64,000 nt of DNA, from sequence record NC_007623.1; one strand, written 5' to 3'. The notes beneath the pieces are model-generated. The model saw only the letters and a program-made list of their open reading frames with translations. It did no database searches and was not told the DNA's origin. The position numbers were made by a program, and so were the translations under genes. Numbering within the stretch: the first letter of the stretch is position 1; every line of letters starts with the position of its first letter. Shown here in pieces: positions 9,070-58,701 of this stretch.

Positions 9070-10794
9070 ATGTTTGACAACAAACCCAGCACGAGTGCTG
9101 AGCGAGCGGTGGCGGGTACTGATTTGGCTCCTGAGAATGACGGCCAACGGTACAGGATCCATTATCTGCCTGACATCTATGATCCGGACAAGCATCCGCC
9201 GGAGGACATTGTTAAGTACGTGGTTCCCCGGGAACGGGAATTGGTGATCGATGTACCCAATAAACAGTTCCTGGAGGTGATTCATGTGGATTACCAGGGG
9301 AAGACCTTGAAGTCTACCTTGGTTCCGTGGGAACCTCGGACCAGTGAGGACGGTACCACAACTGAACAAGACTGGATCTTCGGTCTACGAGGAGGTCCTC
9401 TGTTGGGTGAAGCCTTGCTGAGTGTGGACTACAGCCAACGACCTAACGTAGCGCGTGTTGACAGCACCATCATGCGACCCGGCGCAGCGTACGCTAAACT
9501 CTACCTCGGTAACGACGCCAGTGACAACGGTCGGATCATCAGTGCCCAGTACGACAAGTCGGCGAATATGATCAGCAACAAGGTACCTACCAAGTTGGCT
9601 GAGATCGTAGACCGTACGAACCTGGAGATTATGACCACGGGTCCTTTCAGTGTCACGGAGAACGAGGAGGCCCTGAAAGACGGTACGCGTTGTACGTTGG
9701 TGTTCTATGACGAGGGGGGTAACTTCATTCCCCCGGTTCAACCTGTAATGGTCCAACATTGTGCATACATGCGGGATCACCAGATTGGTACCAAGTATGT
9801 CACGGAGATTGAACTGCTCACACCGTGGTTTACCAATACAGTCAATGCGGAGAAGATTATCATTCCGGTGAACGTATTGGTAACGGCTATTGAGTTCAGG
9901 GCGGTGATTCATTACTCGGATGGCAGTACCAGTGCGCCCATGCCGGTGAACGGTGAACGGTTCAACCTGTATGGGTTGAATGAATGGCGCCCCACCTGGC
10001 CGGGTCAAGAGGGTGAGATCGTTCTGACCCTTAAACTGGCAGCGAATGAACAGCATTACATTGCCAAACCCGGGAGTCCCGATCACATCAGTCGAACCTA
10101 TTCGGTAGAAGCCGGTCCTGTTAAAGGCGCGTACTCGCCGAAGATCTACACCTTCCCGCAATGGGATCCGAGTATTTCGGGGTATCGACTCCAACATTGG
10201 CTGTTGGATCTGGATCGGAAAACGGCCATTGATGTGACCGCTCAAGTGAAGTTCAATGAGAAGAGTGAAGTCTGGCGGCCTTCTGCCTACGGGGTTGCTC
10301 AATCGTTGATCTTTAACTTGAACCTGAGGGATGTATCGAGTCAGTACGAGAGTGTGATCTTCCGGCAGTACACCACCATTGTGTTGTATAAAGACATCAA
10401 TGGGCCGGGTAAACGCTTTGACGTGTCCTTCTCGCAGAATAAACCGTCGTACGAAGCGAAGTTCATTGTCGCTAAGAACGCCGGAGCTGCTACCACGGTC
10501 AATGTGGCCAACGGGTACGGTAATCAAACGGATTGGCTGAAAGCGTTGTATTGGGGGGTCGAACCTAGCTTCAATCGGTTCGATGAAGAGAAAGCTCCTT
10601 TACCCACTCATTTCTACCTGGTTCATGAAGACGGGCGTTCCTGGCGGTATCCGATCTCGGATTGGAATAAGAACAACGCCATCAACATTGAACTTCAGAA
10701 GGGTAAGACCTGGTTCCTTCGTTGGGTGGAACGCCAAACGTCTGGTGATGAGAAGCAACTGGCCGTTACTGGTGTAACGGTTGAATTTCCTTAA
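9070..10794 (+). CDS. Virion structural protein (phiKZ gp26 position)
   Basis: 574 aa, beta-rich; upstream of terminase. Confidence 0.6.
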   Translation: MFDNKPSTSAERAVAGTDLAPENDGQRYRIHYLPDIYDPDKHPPEDIVKYVVPRERELVIDVPNKQFLEVIHVDYQGKTLKSTLVPWEPRTSEDGTTTEQDWIFGLRGGPLLGEALLSVDYSQRPNVARVDSTIMRPGAAYAKLYLGNDASDNGRIISAQYDKSANMISNKVPTKLAEIVDRTNLEIMTTGPFSVTENEEALKDGTRCTLVFYDEGGNFIPPVQPVMVQHCAYMRDHQIGTKYVTEIELLTPWFTNTVNAEKIIIPVNVLVTAIEFRAVIHYSDGSTSAPMPVNGERFNLYGLNEWRPTWPGQEGEIVLTLKLAANEQHYIAKPGSPDHISRTYSVEAGPVKGAYSPKIYTFPQWDPSISGYRLQHWLLDLDRKTAIDVTAQVKFNEKSEVWRPSAYGVAQSLIFNLNLRDVSSQYESVIFRQYTTIVLYKDINGPGKRFDVSFSQNKPSYEAKFIVAKNAGAATTVNVANGYGNQTDWLKALYWGVEPSFNRFDEEKAPLPTHFYLVHEDGRSWRYPISDWNKNNAINIELQKGKTWFLRWVERQTSGDEKQLAVTGVTVEFP

Positions 10795-51557: not shown

Positions 51558-52859
51558 TTATTTCAATGCCATCTCCAAGTCTAAGAGGTTCGTACGGCTG
51601 CCCGCTGTGTGGTGTGCCTTCATGCGCTGCAATAAAAATGCAGTAGGAATCAAGACCACCTCAGAGCTGAGACGATGCCCTAAAGCCCCTAGACCTTCCC
51701 CACAACAGGTCTTACAATAGTAACCGTCCTTTAGGGTACAGAACTGAGGGACTCTGGCTTGTACGGGTTTATTAACGTAACGATCCAGGTTTTCAGCGGT
51801 GAGCTGTATCAGGACTTTCCCATCCTGGATCCACGTTCCTACCCAGTATCCTTTATTGGTTGGTAGGATCGTAACGGTTTCGGTCACCGGGGTACCGCAA
51901 TCCACGACATCCTCGCTAACGGCCGTACGGCCTATTAGACGCAACGTTTCCTTAACCCTAGCCCCACCTTCACCGGTGGACATAGAACGGCTGTAAGAGC
52001 CCTCTACGGCCGTGTTAATGTAGTCTGCCAAGAAGTTCGGATCCCAACCCTCCGCCAGGGAGTTAGGGAGCAGTACCCAACCGTCTCCTGAGGCATTGGG
52101 TTCAATACCGAAGGAAATGAACATCCGTTTACGCGAGTTGTCAATAAACTTCTTTGCAATAAAGAACTTACGGCTAGGACCAGACATTACGATCTTCATG
52201 TCCAGCGCCACACACTGATCAATAATCGAGGTAGCAACAACCGGATCATTGAGTTCGTCTTTATGCTCTTTAAAGAGACGATCCCTGAGTTTAATGACTT
52301 CAGGACTCACCGTTAGGGCATCTACTCCACCCGGTTTAATGAAGTGAGACCCTAACCCTTCCAGGAACTGGCAGTTATGGGAGAACTTCAAACACTGGTC
52401 TACACTGGCCTTCCCTTCAGGTACCGCTTCCCCCGGTGGGGGATTATCCACCATGAGAGTTTCCAAGATCTTCAAGATAACCGGTTTGGTGAACTCCTGG
52501 TTAAGGTAGGGTTGGGTCTTCCCGAAGCATTCCCAGAAGAGGATAACGTTGAAGAGTAAGAGTCCAAAGGTAGTCGTGACCGCTTTACCTTGCAACACGG
52601 GATGGAAGTCTCCCGGGAGTTCCAGGATTTCATCCATGTAGAACAGGGGTTCATTCACCTCCCCATTTACGGTATGGGTAGAACCCTCTACCACGACATT
52701 GAACCGATTATCCTCCACAAAGACAGCATAGGGGTATTTCTTGAACTGTCCAGAGGAATCTTCGTCTTCAAACTGGATAGTAATAATCGATTGAATAGCC
52801 GCCTTTTCGTTATAGGCTCGGTTATTCAGAAAGAGTTTAAGGTAGTCGAGTTTAGTCAT
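51558..52859 (-). CDS. rpoC: Virion RNAP beta' C-terminal fragment (phiKZ gp80-like)
   Basis: TGEGG...LR, DCGT, CKTCCG, QRMKAHHTAG trigger-loop motif; second beta'-C copy implies the virion enzyme. Confidence 0.82.
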   Translation of the reverse strand: MTKLDYLKLFLNNRAYNEKAAIQSIITIQFEDEDSSGQFKKYPYAVFVEDNRFNVVVEGSTHTVNGEVNEPLFYMDEILELPGDFHPVLQGKAVTTTFGLLLFNVILFWECFGKTQPYLNQEFTKPVILKILETLMVDNPPPGEAVPEGKASVDQCLKFSHNCQFLEGLGSHFIKPGGVDALTVSPEVIKLRDRLFKEHKDELNDPVVATSIIDQCVALDMKIVMSGPSRKFFIAKKFIDNSRKRMFISFGIEPNASGDGWVLLPNSLAEGWDPNFLADYINTAVEGSYSRSMSTGEGGARVKETLRLIGRTAVSEDVVDCGTPVTETVTILPTNKGYWVGTWIQDGKVLIQLTAENLDRYVNKPVQARVPQFCTLKDGYYCKTCCGEGLGALGHRLSSEVVLIPTAFLLQRMKAHHTAGSRTNLLDLEMALK

Positions 52860-53755
52860 GGGAGTTCCACTCGCTGAATAAGGTCTTCAATACGGGTCAA
52901 CGTCAGAGGGTCTTCAATGACCGAATAGAGGTATTGGGTCATCTTATCCTTAAGCCATTCGTTATTGATTTCAGACACCAGGAAGAACCCAATAACCTCC
53001 TTGGCATACTGAAGGGTACTGTCTTCCGTTTGTTGAGCCAGGAGAACTTCCAAGTTACGACTGTAGAAACTCAGGAAGCTCTTTACACTCCCTCCCAGTT
53101 GTCCGTTCTTCTTAACGTGTTCAAAGGCCAGAGTTCCTTCAATAAGGGTTGCATTCGCCCGAATACGCTGTTCAATAGGGGTGGGAACGTTCTCAATCTC
53201 CTCGGGGTTAAAGAGAGCGTCCTTAATGGCTTTAAGGGTGACTTCTGAAACATCCTCAATAAAGGTTTCGTACTCTGACAGATCGAGGTCTTCACCCAGG
53301 TAGAGTTGCATCACCAGGAACAGTCGGTTCACAGGGGGGATGTCATACGCCTCCAAGACGTGTTTAAGACCAATCAGGTCTTCGTACTCCTGCAACTCCA
53401 TAAAGAACGACAACAACCGAGTTAAAGCAGGGAGGTTGTCTTCACCCAGGAAATCGTGATTGAAAACGAACCCTAGCTGTTCCAGCACATCGATTATATT
53501 GGTCGTTAGGATCAAATACACCTGATGCTTCTTAGCCGGGATTTCCAAAGCTTCATTAATCAACAGATCAGTCAGTTGACTGGGCATCAAGGACTCAGGT
53601 TGACTGAGCATAATTAAATTAAACGATTCATCCAATTCTTTAGCCTGATTGGCGGGTATGGCGTTCCGGAGTTCTGACCAGAGACCCCCTACCAGGGTGT
53701 CAGCCAGGTACGCTCCCTCTTCCAGGGTAACAGATTCTTCATGCTCAATAATCAT
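52856..53755 (-). CDS. Conserved hypothetical acidic protein (phiKZ gp79 position)
   Basis: Probable ATG 53755; ATGA coupling to the vRNAP gene. Confidence 0.7.
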   Translation of the reverse strand: MIIEHEESVTLEEGAYLADTLVGGLWSELRNAIPANQAKELDESFNLIMLSQPESLMPSQLTDLLINEALEIPAKKHQVYLILTTNIIDVLEQLGFVFNHDFLGEDNLPALTRLLSFFMELQEYEDLIGLKHVLEAYDIPPVNRLFLVMQLYLGEDLDLSEYETFIEDVSEVTLKAIKDALFNPEEIENVPTPIEQRIRANATLIEGTLAFEHVKKNGQLGGSVKSFLSFYSRNLEVLLAQQTEDSTLQYAKEVIGFFLVSEINNEWLKDKMTQYLYSVIEDPLTLTRIEDLIQRVELP

Positions 53756-53800
53756 TGGGTTAACTCTCGTAAAGTGCGTTTCCAAAGGGAATCATAGCAT

Positions 53801-54670
53801 ATGTCGACTAAACAGCAACAGCGTCGGGTTAAGAAACTCAATAAACGCAAGCAAGTGAGTAAGCAAAAACAACGGGCTAAGAACATCCAGGACGCTTACC
53901 TCCGACAGGACTTTGGTAAAGGCTACCAGGGGGAGGCCCTGAGTAAGGATGCCTTGTACGATAAGGTCAGGGGTGAAAACAAAGCCTTCTCGGTACGCGA
54001 CCTTATTAATAACCGTCAACGTCTGGCTGAGCTGGCTGAACAGATGAAGCTGACGGGTGATGAGGACATCCCTCAGCTCTTCAGTGGGGAAGAACTCCTC
54101 AACGCTATCAACGACATGATTACCGTCACCATTAAGCTCCACAGTGGGGTGATCGTGTACAACCGTCTGGTTGAAGAACGCCGCTTTGATATCAGTGAGG
54201 ATGACCGTGCCTTACTGGAGAACTACGAACGCAAAGTGGTGGAGTTTGCGGAAGATGTCTCAGTCGTCACGACCCTGCATGAAGCAGGTCAACAACCCGA
54301 GGATTACTTTGAAGTCGTCCTTAACCTGGCCGATGTCATGGCAGCCCTCAGTGAGGAGTTTGGGGAACCGGTTCTGGATCTCATTACCCAACAGGGTGAT
54401 CTGATCGAAGCCTATGCCGTTGAACACAAACCTGAAGGACTGTCTGTCTACGATTACATGTGTCAACTTCATAGTGAACGTATTACGGTTATCCAACAGT
54501 TGTACGGTGAGAGCCGGCTGAATGACGTCTTTAACGAATTGCACACCCTGGAGCAGGAACTCCCAGATTCCCCTGAAGAGATCCCAGGTGATAACCTCCC
54601 CTTCCCTGAGAAGGAAGAGGTTGGCGAATTCATCGCTATTTCCAACGATCCTGTCATTAACCCCCAGTAA
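53801..54670 (+). CDS. Hypothetical protein with basic N-terminus and helical acidic body
   Basis: AAGGGA RBS; 289 aa. Confidence 0.75.
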   Translation: MSTKQQQRRVKKLNKRKQVSKQKQRAKNIQDAYLRQDFGKGYQGEALSKDALYDKVRGENKAFSVRDLINNRQRLAELAEQMKLTGDEDIPQLFSGEELLNAINDMITVTIKLHSGVIVYNRLVEERRFDISEDDRALLENYERKVVEFAEDVSVVTTLHEAGQQPEDYFEVVLNLADVMAALSEEFGEPVLDLITQQGDLIEAYAVEHKPEGLSVYDYMCQLHSERITVIQQLYGESRLNDVFNELHTLEQELPDSPEEIPGDNLPFPEKEEVGEFIAISNDPVINPQ

Positions 54671-54682
54671 GGGACTGTTTGT

Positions 54683-56407
54683 ATGTCTGAGAATGTAACC
54701 CCGAACGAAAACCCTGAACTGACTCCCCCTTCGGAGTTGAGCAAAGCTGTTGAACAAACGATTCCCAAAACGGAGCCTTCCAGCCACTTTGGCTTCATGG
54801 ATACCCACACGCCTCAGAATACACCCATGAAGGAGGTGGTGGAACCGCTCAACCCCATTACCAAAGAACTGGTTGAAGACGATCGAGCTAAGGGGTTCAC
54901 CAGTATCTTCCTGGGGGTTGGTAAAGAAGAGAATGAGAAAGCGGCTGAACTGATTACCAACTGGAGTGCGTGGAACACGTTCAAAGAATTGAATAAGGTA
55001 GGGGAGGTTTCCCCAACAGTCTTTGCATCAGCTAAGCAAGACTGGGATGCCTTTGTTCAAGAGAACTACCCGGATGTGAATCCCAATGAGTTGGAGAAGA
55101 CCGCTAGTGATCTGTTCAAGTTCATGAACAGTCTTCAGGAGAACCTCCAACTTCGTACCCGCATGGTGCGGGAAGAGAATATTACCAACGCCTCGCGCCG
55201 GTGTGATAAACTCACCACGACCGATATCGTTGGTAAAACCCCGTCGGTGAATAAGAAAGGGTTGAGTATTGCAGATCGCATGATTCGCTCGACCATTCGT
55301 TCGTCGGGGGGTGTATACCAGTATAACCAACTGCTGCGTAATTCGTTCCTGAGTATTACGTGGGAACGTCCTCAGAAGCTGGAAGTCGCCGATCTCATCA
55401 ACAACATTAACCGCCGTATTCGGGGGTATGTACGACGGGTCGGTGGGAACGCCATGGCGTTGTCTTACATCGCGGGATATATTGAGATCTGGGATTGGTT
55501 GAAGCCCCGCTTGGTCAGCAGCAGTGTCAAAGGCCTGGCGGATTTCGATGACCTCAGCAAGGTGATCCGTATTACGGACATGCCGGTGATCTGTGCAGGT
55601 CTCTTGGCGTCGATCACGGATGACGGCGTCCAAATGGACCTCCGCTGCATGAACCCCAGCTGTGACTGGTATCAGTTCGATCTCATTGATCCGACTAAGT
55701 TGGTGCAGCGTCGTCCGTCGATTGAAACCGATGAAGAAGCCGCCTTCTTTGGTAATATCTTCAGTGGGCGTGAACAACACACCGTCGATGAAATCCTCAA
55801 GATGATCGAACAGTCCACCTACGGGATGGACAATCGGTACGTGTACAACGAGGATCAATCCATTCGTCTGAAAGTAGGACCTCCCAGTCTGTCGGATGCC
55901 TTCGCTACCTTCGACTATTTCGTAGGGCGTGTAGATAAGCAGTTGGCGGATATTAGCAACAAAGTCAACACGGAACAAGACCTGGAAGAGCAACGTCTCC
56001 TTCTGCTTAACAGCTTGAGTGGGGCGGAGTACATGCACTGGGTGGAAGAGTTCGCTATTATGCCACCTCCGGGTGAGGACAGTGAACCCCAGGTCATTAA
56101 GCGGGCCAAGGAAGACCCTAACGAGTTCAATAAAGGTCTTATGGACTCCCTGCTGACCGATGAGGTGATGAATAAGAACTTGGTGTTGTTCGTCTACAAT
56201 AAAGCGCCTTATCTGACCCGGACCTTTATTGGTGTCCGTAACTTCGTGTGTCCGAAGTGCGGTACGGAGTCGGATGCTCACCAAGAGGATCGTAAACTCG
56301 GGTATACCCCGATCGATGCCTTTATGAGTTTTTTTATCCATTCCCAGCTGATGTTGATGAATCTGGCGATGGAGCGTCAAAAGGTAAACAACGAAGCCCT
56401 CTCCTGA
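54683..56407 (+). CDS. Putative tail/baseplate assembly chaperone, T4 gp26/gp51-like Cys motifs
   Basis: ITDMPVICAGLLASITDDGVQMDLRCMNPSC and CPKCG...DAFMSFF; T7 slippery run at the FF codons. Confidence 0.55.
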   Translation: MSENVTPNENPELTPPSELSKAVEQTIPKTEPSSHFGFMDTHTPQNTPMKEVVEPLNPITKELVEDDRAKGFTSIFLGVGKEENEKAAELITNWSAWNTFKELNKVGEVSPTVFASAKQDWDAFVQENYPDVNPNELEKTASDLFKFMNSLQENLQLRTRMVREENITNASRRCDKLTTTDIVGKTPSVNKKGLSIADRMIRSTIRSSGGVYQYNQLLRNSFLSITWERPQKLEVADLINNINRRIRGYVRRVGGNAMALSYIAGYIEIWDWLKPRLVSSSVKGLADFDDLSKVIRITDMPVICAGLLASITDDGVQMDLRCMNPSCDWYQFDLIDPTKLVQRRPSIETDEEAAFFGNIFSGREQHTVDEILKMIEQSTYGMDNRYVYNEDQSIRLKVGPPSLSDAFATFDYFVGRVDKQLADISNKVNTEQDLEEQRLLLLNSLSGAEYMHWVEEFAIMPPPGEDSEPQVIKRAKEDPNEFNKGLMDSLLTDEVMNKNLVLFVYNKAPYLTRTFIGVRNFVCPKCGTESDAHQEDRKLGYTPIDAFMSFFIHSQLMLMNLAMERQKVNNEALS

Positions 56408-56502
56408 TTGGCGGTAAAGCGATTCACAATCCGGAGTTCTCGGCGGTTTACTTAAACCTCCAGAAGCAAGATCTCAGTGGTCTCAAGGAAGAGACTATCC
56501 TG

Positions 56503-56877
56503 TTGAACAACCAAGCGTTGCATGACATCAACATGGGATATGTCTCACCCCGTAATCTCCCCCCTCACCAATCGATTAAGTTCTTTCCGTCTGAAGTCAG
56601 GTATTACCACCCCTTCTCGTATGAGAGTATAGGGGAGTATTACGGGACTTTTCGGCTGGATGAATACCTGCCCTTAAGGGATTACTTGGAATTGCCCGCT
56701 AACTGTGCAGACACGTTGGTTAAGGCCGTTCAAAAGGGACGGGAAAAACGGTTGGTAATGGAGAAAGAGCATCTGAAGGAAGAGGAAGAGAAACAGGCGA
56801 AGAATGGGGGTAAACGAACCGCCTCGGAGTCGGTTTCTATGGATGCATTACTGGATCAATTGTCTAAACTTCGTTAA
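56503..56877 (+). CDS. Small ORF, probable -1 frameshift extension of the upstream gene (T-like domain)
   Basis: Its frame is open back to 56296, covering the slippery site; LPLRDYLELP pattern like chaperone T domains; only TTG/CTG starts with a distant AAGGA. Confidence 0.6.
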   Translation: MNNQALHDINMGYVSPRNLPPHQSIKFFPSEVRYYHPFSYESIGEYYGTFRLDEYLPLRDYLELPANCADTLVKAVQKGREKRLVMEKEHLKEEEEKQAKNGGKRTASESVSMDALLDQLSKLR

Positions 56878-56884
56878 GAGAATG

Positions 56885-56917
56885 GGTAACCTGGGGGCCT
56901 AGAGCCCCCAGGTTATC
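56885..56917. terminator. Hairpin/terminator
   Basis: 14-bp stem GGTAACCTGGGGGC/GCCCCCAGGTTATC. Confidence 0.6.
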
Positions 56918-56979: not shown

Positions 56980-57588
56980 ATGTCCAACGATTACAAAGCA
57001 CCTGAGGTTACTGACCTCGGTAAGAAAGAAGAAAGTCCGAAGACCCAACCTACGCCTTCCATCCCCAATACGGTGGCTAAGGCTCAGGGTGCTAAATTCG
57101 AACCCGTACCTCTCCGTATTGGCATTGGCCAAATGGTCAATGGCAAAGGTAATGCGGTCACGGATATCATGAAAGAACGGATTGACCGTCACCTGACCTA
57201 CCTGGCCGGTAAGAAAGGCTTCACCAGTGATAGTGAACGGGAGGATGAACAAACCTCCTTTATCGAGATCATTGGTTCTACACTGACCCTTCCGTTTCCC
57301 CAGTACGTCATCGTTACTGACTACCTGTTGGCGGTTATCCGGGAGAACCGGGAAATCTTTGCCAACGGTACGGCATTCCGCTTTACCTACAAGCTCCGTA
57401 AGGAGTACCCGATAGAGAACGTTAAACTCTATCACACCTACATGACCTTCCTGACGTTCATCGCGGGTAACTGGGAAGCTCGTCATCGCCTTAACCGCAT
57501 CATTGATCTGGGAACGGCTATCCGCGATCTTCCTCGTAAGGGCAAAGAGAACGCCACCCAGTACTTCAATAAGCTGCAAAACGTTTGA
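56980..57588 (+). CDS. Conserved hypothetical, probably structural protein (202 aa)
   Basis: AAGGG RBS; TTATG motif upstream. Confidence 0.7.
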   Translation: MSNDYKAPEVTDLGKKEESPKTQPTPSIPNTVAKAQGAKFEPVPLRIGIGQMVNGKGNAVTDIMKERIDRHLTYLAGKKGFTSDSEREDEQTSFIEIIGSTLTLPFPQYVIVTDYLLAVIRENREIFANGTAFRFTYKLRKEYPIENVKLYHTYMTFLTFIAGNWEARHRLNRIIDLGTAIRDLPRKGKENATQYFNKLQNV

Positions 57589-57624
57589 TTTCCCTTTAGA
57601 CTCTTTATCCAAGGAACGCTTCCA

Positions 57625-58701
57625 ATGGACAGTGTTGTACTTACCGAAGAAGACGGTAATGGTTATGAAATCCCGGATCTCCCTCATATCGGGATTGTGT
57701 ATGATGCGCTTAACGATACCCTGGATCAAGTGGATCGGGGTGTTGCAGGTACGGAAAGCCTGACCGCCTCCCAACAGTACCTGGTGGGTGCACTCGCTGC
57801 GAACCGACCTGGTTACTCGGTGACCGGTAACGAAGGCTTTATGGCCAATATCGGTGCAGGTCTTAAAGCCGCGTATGACTACGTGGTGAAGATGTTCAAG
57901 AGCCTCTGGGACTTCTTCTTCAAGCGTGATGTCTCTCAGAAGACCTCGGATGCTAAGAAGGAGATTGATGACCTCCAGACAAAACTGGAGGTGGTTCAGA
58001 CCGGGGGTAAGACGGAAGCGGAAACCCAGGAAGCCCTGCACTCCATGAAGGTCCAGGTTAAGGAACAGGCACAATCTGGCTTTAACATCGACGGGGTAGA
58101 CGCAGAAGAATGGGTGGAGAAAGAGACGAAGGCCTCCGCTACCCATGAGGAGAAGAAAGTCGCGGTTAAGACCCTGGCCAGAGAGCTTCCTAAGGTCAAC
58201 ACCCGGGGCAAGAAACGCCTCCAAGGTGTCATTGAGCGGATGATCAAAACTCAGCAATATTTGGTCAGTGTGATTGATATCGCCGATAAAGAAGCTCGGG
58301 AAACCCTGAATGAAAACCTCATGCGGGTAACGGACTCTATGAAACTCCTCCGCACCAATGTTCATCAGTCTACTGAGCAACTGAGTCGAGTGAAAGACGT
58401 CAAAGACCTGACGGCTGTACACAACGTCATGAACGGTGTTATTAAAGAGATCGATACCTTTAAGAATGCTGCTCAGGCCGTGCAGAGTGTTCGCGGCAAA
58501 ATGGCTGACAAGATTAAGATCGTTGAACAGCAATTGGCCGAGGTGGCTAAAGGTGGAGGTGACACCAAAGCGACTCAAGCAGCGCTGGATGAACTCCGCA
58601 AGATCATGAACTTCCTGGTTAAATGCGGTAAATGTATTACTAACATCATTGAAGACAGTGTGAAGCTCCAGAAAGCCTTTAATGGTGTCTTCGGGCTGTA
58701 A
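57625..58701 (+). CDS. Putative internal head protein
   Basis: AAGGA RBS; GNE|GF followed by an amphipathic helix (YDYVVKMFKSLWDFF); coiled-coil body. Confidence 0.6.
   Translation: MDSVVLTEEDGNGYEIPDLPHIGIVYDALNDTLDQVDRGVAGTESLTASQQYLVGALAANRPGYSVTGNEGFMANIGAGLKAAYDYVVKMFKSLWDFFFKRDVSQKTSDAKKEIDDLQTKLEVVQTGGKTEAETQEALHSMKVQVKEQAQSGFNIDGVDAEEWVEKETKASATHEEKKVAVKTLARELPKVNTRGKKRLQGVIERMIKTQQYLVSVIDIADKEARETLNENLMRVTDSMKLLRTNVHQSTEQLSRVKDVKDLTAVHNVMNGVIKEIDTFKNAAQAVQSVRGKMADKIKIVEQQLAEVAKGGGDTKATQAALDELRKIMNFLVKCGKCITNIIEDSVKLQKAFNGVFGL

Follow-up and report, generated by a model that had tools for sequence, protein, structure and literature searches.

Our analysis of Pseudomonas phage EL (NC_007623/AJ697969; genus Elvirus, 211 kb) concerns two adjacent genes of this giant phage, gp47 and gp48, both annotated as encoding a 'hypothetical protein' and located in the window under study (bases 1–64000 of the record, with its coordinates unchanged). 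Comparison with related phages indicates that gp47 and gp48 are probably a single recoded gene, from which two proteins would be produced on one mRNA by a −1 shift of the reading frame. The 0-frame open reading frame (ORF) of gp47 (54683–56407; plus strand, as for all the signals located below) encodes 574 amino acids (aa; 65.3 kDa) and belongs to phrog_4585, without a Pfam family; gp48 is annotated at 56503–56877 as a TTG-initiated gene of 124 aa (14.4 kDa; phrog_19747). A slippery heptamer, T_TTT_TTT, is found in phase within gp47 at 56329–56335. The conservation of this signal, the coding character of the −1 frame that follows it and the absence of homologues in which both parts are fused are established here. 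A programmed −1 shift on this T run had been proposed in an earlier note on the same DNA, and the comparison of 41 loci presented below strongly supports it.

Slippery heptamer and open −1 frame in EL and related giant phages

Read in the gp47 frame, the site is AGT TTT TTT ATC, so that its seven T's make up a correctly phased X_XXY_YYZ heptamer whose P-site codon is at 56330–56332 and A-site codon at 56333–56335; gp47 then runs for another 23 sense codons to its stop. The −1 frame, which is also that of gp48, contains no stop from 56296 to 56874 (194 codons). These three elements (phase, distance to the gp47 stop and opening of the −1 frame from 56296) had been described in the earlier note and are confirmed in the sequence. 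Translation of the open stretch 5′ of the heptamer (56296–56334) is not expected, and the segment decoded after the shift would run from 56335 to 56877 (180 codons and a stop). In the overlap of both frames (56335–56407), the 0 frame holds the last 23 codons of gp47 and its stop, and the −1 frame the first 24 codons of the extension. Beyond this overlap, the stretch annotated as intergenic (56408–56502) is open in the −1 frame in EL and in all 41 loci, and the earliest ATG, GTG or TTG of the gp48 frame is the TTG at 56503. The part shared by both products was calculated at 551 residues (62.7 kDa) and the −1 piece at 180 residues (20.4 kDa). The predicted products are thus a protein of 574 residues (65.3 kDa) in the 0 frame versus ∼731 residues (83.1 kDa) after the shift, in agreement with the fusion of ∼731 aa and the species of ∼65 and 83 kDa announced previously. 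For masses, searches, folds and alignments, the 0-frame and −1-frame pieces were handled separately. No other run of six or more T's occurs in gp47, in which TTT is the minority codon for phenylalanine (6/24). Because this T run is the sole one of the gene, is made of the less used codon and belongs to an arrangement that recurs in 41/41 loci, its occurrence in EL is far beyond chance.

The comparison covers 41 related loci with an identity of 24–57% or less, namely 19 GenBank loci (EL and 18 others), nine loci of a distant branch and thirteen loci from IMG/VR. When the −1 piece was used as tblastn query, phages of Erwinia, Shewanella and Klebsiella gave matches that started at its residue 1 and overlapped the final part of their gp47 homologues. 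In the 18 GenBank loci added to EL, the gp47 homologues are just 24–36% identical to that of EL. All 19 loci of this first set display a downstream ORF in the −1 frame, a single in-phase T_TTT_TTN heptamer located 22–25 codons 5′ of the stop, and a −1 frame that is open from 5′ of the heptamer through the end of the downstream ORF. A profile search among 1.8 billion representatives yielded 155 family clusters and revealed the distant branch, with phiKZ gp77, PhiPA3 gp074, 201phi2-1 gp136, SPN3US gp39, Goslar 81, RSL2, LucasX, Ea35-70 and the Halocynthia phage JM-2012; the −1 relation is found there in 9/9 loci and the in-phase heptamer in 8/9. The same frame relation is present in the thirteen IMG/VR loci.

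Taken together, 41/41 loci, among them phiKZ gp77/76.4, 201phi2-1 gp136/135, SPN3US gp39/40 and Goslar 81/82, place their downstream ORF in the −1 frame, and an in-phase T_TTT_TTN heptamer is present in 39/41, the remaining two displaying N_TTT_TTT. The heptamer is TTTTTTT in 23 loci, TTTTTTC in 15 and TTTTTTA in one (N_TTTTTT in two). Conservation of the slippery site and of the frame relation among orthologues, on which the earlier note had made its proposal depend, was thus observed, and the proposal is not refuted. Over the 149 codons 3′ of the site, the 41 loci contain no stop in the −1 frame, whereas the 0 frame has 344 and the +1 frame 566. The −1 pieces span 149–190 aa in all 41 loci, and those of the EL and phiKZ groups, which align in register (hhalign probability 63%, E 7e-5), are probably homologous. 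Among 120 family representatives, the site encodes FF in 105 and FL in 6 and is followed by 7–44 residues (median 16), and an in-frame fusion to the downstream domain is found in none of them. Since no lineage has replaced the shift by a simple fusion, both isoforms would be needed, and in a set proportion.

Proposed decoding of the heptamer and rival explanations

In Escherichia coli, H_HH.U_UU.Y sequences are among the most efficient −1 motifs, A-site tetramers rank as A_AA.G >> U_UU.C > U_UU.U, and both U_UU.U_UU.C and U_UU.U_UU.U promote >0.1% shifting without stimulators (Sharma et al. 2014, PMC4066793). With a C or a T as last base in 40/41 loci, the heptamers of the gp47 family fit the H_HH.U_UU.Y class. 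We propose that most ribosomes would finish gp47 at its stop and release the 574-residue protein (65 kDa), with a four-cysteine core that is probably zinc-binding and a conserved C-terminal helix of ∼23 residues at its end. A fixed fraction of ribosomes, with two Phe-tRNAs on TTT TTT, would slip back by one base at 56329–56335 and translate the −1 frame as far as 56877, which would give a protein of ∼731 residues (83 kDa). In this long form, the C-terminal helix would be replaced by a proline-rich disordered linker, encoded in part by the 56408–56502 stretch, followed by the helical gp48 domain. The ratio between both isoforms would be set by the heptamer alone, and the arrangement would be ancestral to phiKZ-like giant phages (Chimalliviridae and relatives).

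Several observations weigh against this proposal or reduce its reach. A conserved stimulator was sought around the site: RNAalifold returned 0 pairs in the 80 nucleotides (nt) 3′ of it (19 loci), 70-nt folds after the site were no more stable than shuffled sequences (mean z +0.1; 37 loci), and no Shine–Dalgarno-like motif was found in the 24 nt 5′ of the site. No stimulator being conserved, the efficiency of the shift may be low. In EL, an imperfect hairpin (56337–56373; arms 56337–56347 and 56363–56373) lies 1 nt after the heptamer. The 11-bp stem noticed earlier is present in the minimum free energy fold of EL, but it is no more stable than shuffled sequences (z = +0.37 and +0.34 for 90-nt and 70-nt folds, respectively) and is not conserved, so this hairpin is probably not a stimulator. 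In addition, the first T of the heptamer is missing in PhiPA3 (G_TTT_TTT) and in one of the thirteen IMG/VR loci (C_TTT_TTT). Part of the nucleotide conservation is explained by the protein, in which Phe-Phe is a conserved motif, and the 41 loci share a phylogeny, so that all counts overstate their independence. The literature searched for a trans-frame product (proteomics, ribosome profiling) contained nothing relevant. Finally, gp48 is possibly also made independently in EL, because the Shine–Dalgarno-like AAGGAAGAG precedes its TTG at 56503. Considering that no stimulator is conserved, the shift is most likely low-to-moderate and constitutive, and would depend on the heptamer only, as at classical phage tail-chaperone sites. 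We infer the ribosomal nature of the shift, its actual occurrence and its frequency.

Among the competing explanations, transcriptional slippage survives best, and we regard it as unlikely. The RNA polymerase (from the phage or the host) would add an extra U on the T run, and a subset of mRNAs would then encode the long protein with no ribosomal shift. The protein made in this way would be identical to the product of ribosomal shifting, the conserved element is a homopolymer of 6–7 T's, these phages use unusual multisubunit RNA polymerases, and an RNA stimulator of ribosomal shifting was not found; moreover, UUUUUUU has been noted as slippage-prone (PMC4066793). The composition of the heptamer argues for the ribosome. 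Indeed, 15/41 loci retain a C at the last position and thereby a run of six T's, whereas a longer run would be expected under selection for slippage, and this C gives the better ribosomal A-site tetramer (U_UU.C > U_UU.U). Besides, the X_XXY_YYZ phase is kept in 39/41 loci, and efficient slippage usually requires runs of at least eight.

Much less credible is the view that gp47 and gp48 are two ordinary separate genes. In that case, gp48 would be translated from the TTG at 56503 or from the ATG at 56543 with a ribosome-binding site of its own, the T run would simply encode Phe-Phe, and the open frame would be incidental. This view agrees with current annotation, since 28 of the 29 GenBank records inspected list two separate coding sequences (CDSs), one omits gp48 (OP599913, EL-like), and PHROGs keeps the short protein as a separate family. 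It also agrees with the position of AAGGAAGAG (56485–56493, as read from the sequence), 8–13 nt 5′ of the gp48 TTG. Several results indicate, however, that the nucleotide signal exceeds a conserved Phe-Phe. In 19/19 loci of the first set, TTT is used for the first Phe and follows a codon with T as its third base, against codon usage (the share of TTT among Phe codons in the genes of these loci ranges from 9 to 73%). The product of probabilities is ∼1e-19 if the loci are independent; this figure is overstated, although synonymous sites have reached saturation between clades. Kc263 has TTA (Leu) as its second codon and keeps the nucleotide motif while the amino acid differs.

The coding content of both frames also argues against two separate genes. 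Whereas the two other frames accumulate 344 and 566 stops across the 41 loci, the −1 frame has none, and its amino-acid conservation extends 5′ of all annotated starts, even within gp47. The −1 pieces align from residue 1, upstream of every annotated start, and two −1-frame motifs, [Y/R/H]-P-x-P and R-[G/S]-x-[S/P]-[F/P]-L, precede all of these starts. As for the starts annotated in the homologues (ATG, GTG, TTG, CTG), they are non-homologous, often differ from ATG and are spread over residues 27–77 of the aligned −1 piece, and gp48 is left uncalled in one EL-like record. Since the 0-frame tail after the site is conserved through its last residues together with the −1 frame, the overlap is dual-coding, and synonymous variation is accordingly suppressed there. 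Codon identity among same-residue pairs reaches 0.60 in the overlap versus 0.46 upstream, a level attained by a single control window out of 108. Alongside the shift, ribosomes may also initiate on gp48 independently, which does not explain the conservation 5′ of the annotated starts. The last alternative, in which a single EL gene would have been split through misreading of the homopolymer during sequencing or through a recent frameshift, has a negligible probability and, as far as sequencing error is concerned, is rejected: homopolymer runs are typical sites of indel errors and the EL-like phage HHBS8_1 shows a one-base length difference elsewhere in the region, but 41 loci sequenced independently of one another are all split at this position and with this frame relation, which effectively refutes it, the 0-frame C-terminal tail is conserved to its end, and the family contains no unsplit representative.

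As a separate observation on the overlap, a purine-rich AAGAGGA-like motif is kept ∼57–63 nt 3′ of the heptamer in the Aeromonas, OBP and Serratia group, where it encodes conserved residues in both frames.

Predicted proteins and possible function

The AlphaFold 2 model of gp47 (predicted local distance difference test (pLDDT) 79; predicted template-modelling score 0.76) comprises a helical bundle and an alpha/beta body, its N-terminus is disordered, and its C-terminal helix (residues 546–573) begins exactly at the shift site. Two pairs of cysteines stand out in the alignments of 120 and 89 representatives. In the first pair, C322 and C327 (55646–55663), C327 is invariant and C322 is conserved in at least 90% of the sequences; in the second, C523-P-K-C526 (56249–56260), both residues are invariant or nearly so. 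Because of this conservation, zinc binding, which the earlier note had suggested, is plausible, and the four cysteines form a probable zinc site. In the model of the −1 piece, the first 25 residues are disordered and the remainder is helical, with low confidence (pLDDT 64).

Similarity searches gave little indication of function. Pfam, PHROG and NCBIfam contained no annotated family for gp47, gp48, 89 family members and seven neighbouring genes. Sequence and profile searches of the PDB with gp47 and the −1 piece returned nothing beyond zinc-finger-like noise, with no matching PDB chain for either, and a Foldseek search of the PDB with the gp47 model gave no match with E <2. The −1-piece model (pLDDT 64) retrieved only its own homologues from BFVD, and no cluster names were found for ten distant family members. 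GenBank gives the label 'putative ZipA-like cell division protein' to the gp47 homologues of RisingSun (gp53), ZPAH34, LAh10 and Joad. Since neither EL gp47 nor any of the 89 family members matched ZipA in Pfam, this label looks unfounded, and a ZipA-like function was rejected.

The predicted recoding recalls that of the tail-chaperone genes G/GT of lambda and E/E+E′ of P2. In these systems as in gp47/gp48, the −1 shift takes place on a simple heptamer near the 3′ end of the upstream ORF, the two products have a common N-terminal part (here predicted from sequence), the downstream ORF lacks a good start, and a strong RNA stimulator is absent. The long form would likewise be made in a fixed minor proportion, and the shift has been retained over long evolutionary distances instead of a fusion. 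However, gp47/gp48 products are much larger (574 and ∼731 aa versus roughly 100–150 and 250–300 aa), gp47 has a four-cysteine site that G/GT and E/E+E′ do not have, and both genes are not located between the tail-tube and tape-measure genes, unlike G/GT. No tail-chaperone family of Pfam, PHROG or NCBIfam was matched, and the best tail-chaperone fold match had an E of 2.1 (Foldseek, BFVD). The assignment of gp47/gp48 to a G/GT-type tail-chaperone pair, as initially put forward, is therefore not supported, in view of the gene position, a size four to five times too large and the lack of a family match.

A second comparison concerns T4 gp26 and gp51, which are hub assembly chaperones (PMC3004832). 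A Foldseek search of BFVD with gp47 retrieved its giant-phage homologues first, then other myovirus proteins with falling significance. These include a 'Baseplate hub assembly protein, T4-like' (E 9.9e-4, TM 0.28/0.47, a remote match), the 'baseplate hub assembly chaperone' of ACP17 (E 0.07) and the 'baseplate hub subunit' of SP-15 (E 0.5), and some GenBank and metagenome annotators name gp47 homologues 'baseplate (hub assembly) protein'. Like T4 gp51, the gp47 family was not found in the virion structure and proteome texts checked; gp47 is more than twice the size of T4 gp26 or gp51. We know of no frameshift in T4 genes 26 and 51. Pfam PF12322 (T4_baseplate) was not matched by EL gp47, and one of the 89 family members reached it at E 0.018, below the cut-off. 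As comparator, we used the gp26-like protein of the T4-like Stenotrophomonas phage DLP6, which is a PF12322 member at E 3e-55 (accession from PMC5349666). The C-x(2-4)-C motif occurs twice in EL gp47 and is found neither in this protein nor in the two gp51-like ORFs of DLP6, and the earlier claim of similar CxxC motifs is not supported by this comparator. Of the proposed link to gp26/gp51, the remote Foldseek matches stand (best E 1e-3) while the profile comparison with the PF12322 member was negative, and the kinship suggested by the models is weak. Separately, the gp51-like 'baseplate hub assembly catalyst' of DLP6 (10050–10665 of the locus examined) is annotated as a pair of ORFs that overlap but do not share a frame, AAY80_235 with 60 aa and AAY80_234 with 148 aa. 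The split corresponds to one frame change, due either to a sequencing error or to recoding, and is intriguing in view of the possible kinship between gp47 and hub assembly proteins.

Indirect signs hint that the gp47/gp48 proteins are not virion components. In 201phi2-1, gp135 and gp136 lack the note 'identified by mass spectrometry' that their neighbour gp138 has, Goslar 81/82 are unmentioned in the virion structure and mass spectrometry paper, and SPN3US gp39/40 are absent from the virion mass spectrometry text. Our best guess, offered as a tentative one, is that gp47/gp48 act as a morphogenetic factor outside the virion, related to the baseplate hub or the tail. The shared core would bind one partner and the extension would recruit a second one, with a logic like that of lambda G/GT and P2 E/E′ without membership of these families. 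A more specific and more doubtful version is that gp47/gp48 are the tail or baseplate-hub assembly chaperone of phiKZ-like phages, as a distant relative of T4 gp26/gp51 that has kept the G/GT frameshift logic. If true, this would be the first link between T4-type hub chaperones and the tail chaperones that other long-tailed phages make by frameshifting, and the two-isoform ratio would appear as an ancient and universal need of long-tail assembly. Three points weaken any such assignment: Pfam, PHROG and NCBIfam yielded no annotation; RNA polymerase, helicase, DNA polymerase and head proteins are encoded by the neighbouring genes; and hhalign gave a probability of 0.2% between the 89-sequence profile and the DLP6 gp26-like protein, a single-sequence comparator of low sensitivity.

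The tau/gamma pair of E. coli dnaX offers a third parallel, with a −1 shift on a homopolymeric heptamer, two isoforms that share an N-terminal core and differ at the C-terminus, and a set ratio; the location of gp47/gp48 among replication and transcription genes is a further likeness. The shift shortens the product in dnaX, where strong stimulators flank the site on both sides. In gp47/gp48, by contrast, it would lengthen the product, and no stimulator is conserved. A dnaX-like clamp loader was rejected, as no AAA+ or clamp-loader similarity was found.

Gene neighbourhood, annotation and significance

The neighbours of gp47 and gp48 in EL comprise genes for RNA polymerase beta subunits, helicase and DNA polymerase, genes of unknown function and two head-type virion proteins; phiKZ, 201phi2-1 and others have the same block. 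A syntenic order composed of a minus-strand head/virion protein gene (phiKZ gp79-like), a gp46-like gene, gp47, gp48 and a gene of ∼180 aa is observed in nearly all the giant phages examined; in EL, its flanks lie at window positions 52856–54670 and 56980–58701. Ten nt 3′ of the gp48 stop, a perfect GC-rich hairpin (12-bp stem, 5-nt loop; 56887–56915) can be read from the sequence. It may be a terminator or a processing site closing the gp46–gp48 unit; the terminator scan did not flag it because it has no T tract.

Several records of related phages deserve a comment. In phiKZ, the annotated PHIKZ076.4 (71442–71684, 80 aa) is the tail end of an open −1 frame of 165 codons, which begins at a T_TTT_TTT inside gp77, 12 codons 5′ of the gp77 stop. 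The gp47–gp48 region of HHBS8_1 (PQ287644) is shorter by a single base and its match to gp47 is broken in two, which amounts to one frame change. In the 184-kb record of vB_PQ1 (PQ516283), the region is scattered over three places, and for this reason the record is probably an incomplete or rearranged assembly.

None of the 29 GenBank records contains a joined CDS. A description of the frameshift was not found in the literature searched and may exist beyond it; the matches to 'gp77' come from the numbering of other phages. Both results agree with the statement of the earlier note that the shift had not been described in Chimalliviridae. The gp47/gp48 shift is thus very likely a new case of recoding by a mechanism already known, in a gene that is widely conserved in this family. 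It would add a well-conserved, stimulator-free U_UUU_UUY site to the few phage recoding events known outside classical tail-chaperone genes.

To conclude, phiKZ, PhiPA3, 201phi2-1, Goslar and SPN3US are models of nucleus-forming giant phages, and several of these phages are candidates for phage therapy. If the proposed shift is true, a gene present in every genome of the group examined is mis-annotated in all of them. The small downstream 'gene' would largely be a domain of a larger protein, the 'intergenic' stretch that precedes it would be coding, and a protein of ∼83 kDa would be absent from giant-phage proteomes. Proteomics databases and structural searches for unassigned densities would be affected, as well as essentiality screens, since insertions in 'gp48' would strike the long isoform. 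Besides, the shift would offer a concrete and readily tested handle on the function of a probable zinc-binding family of giant phages.

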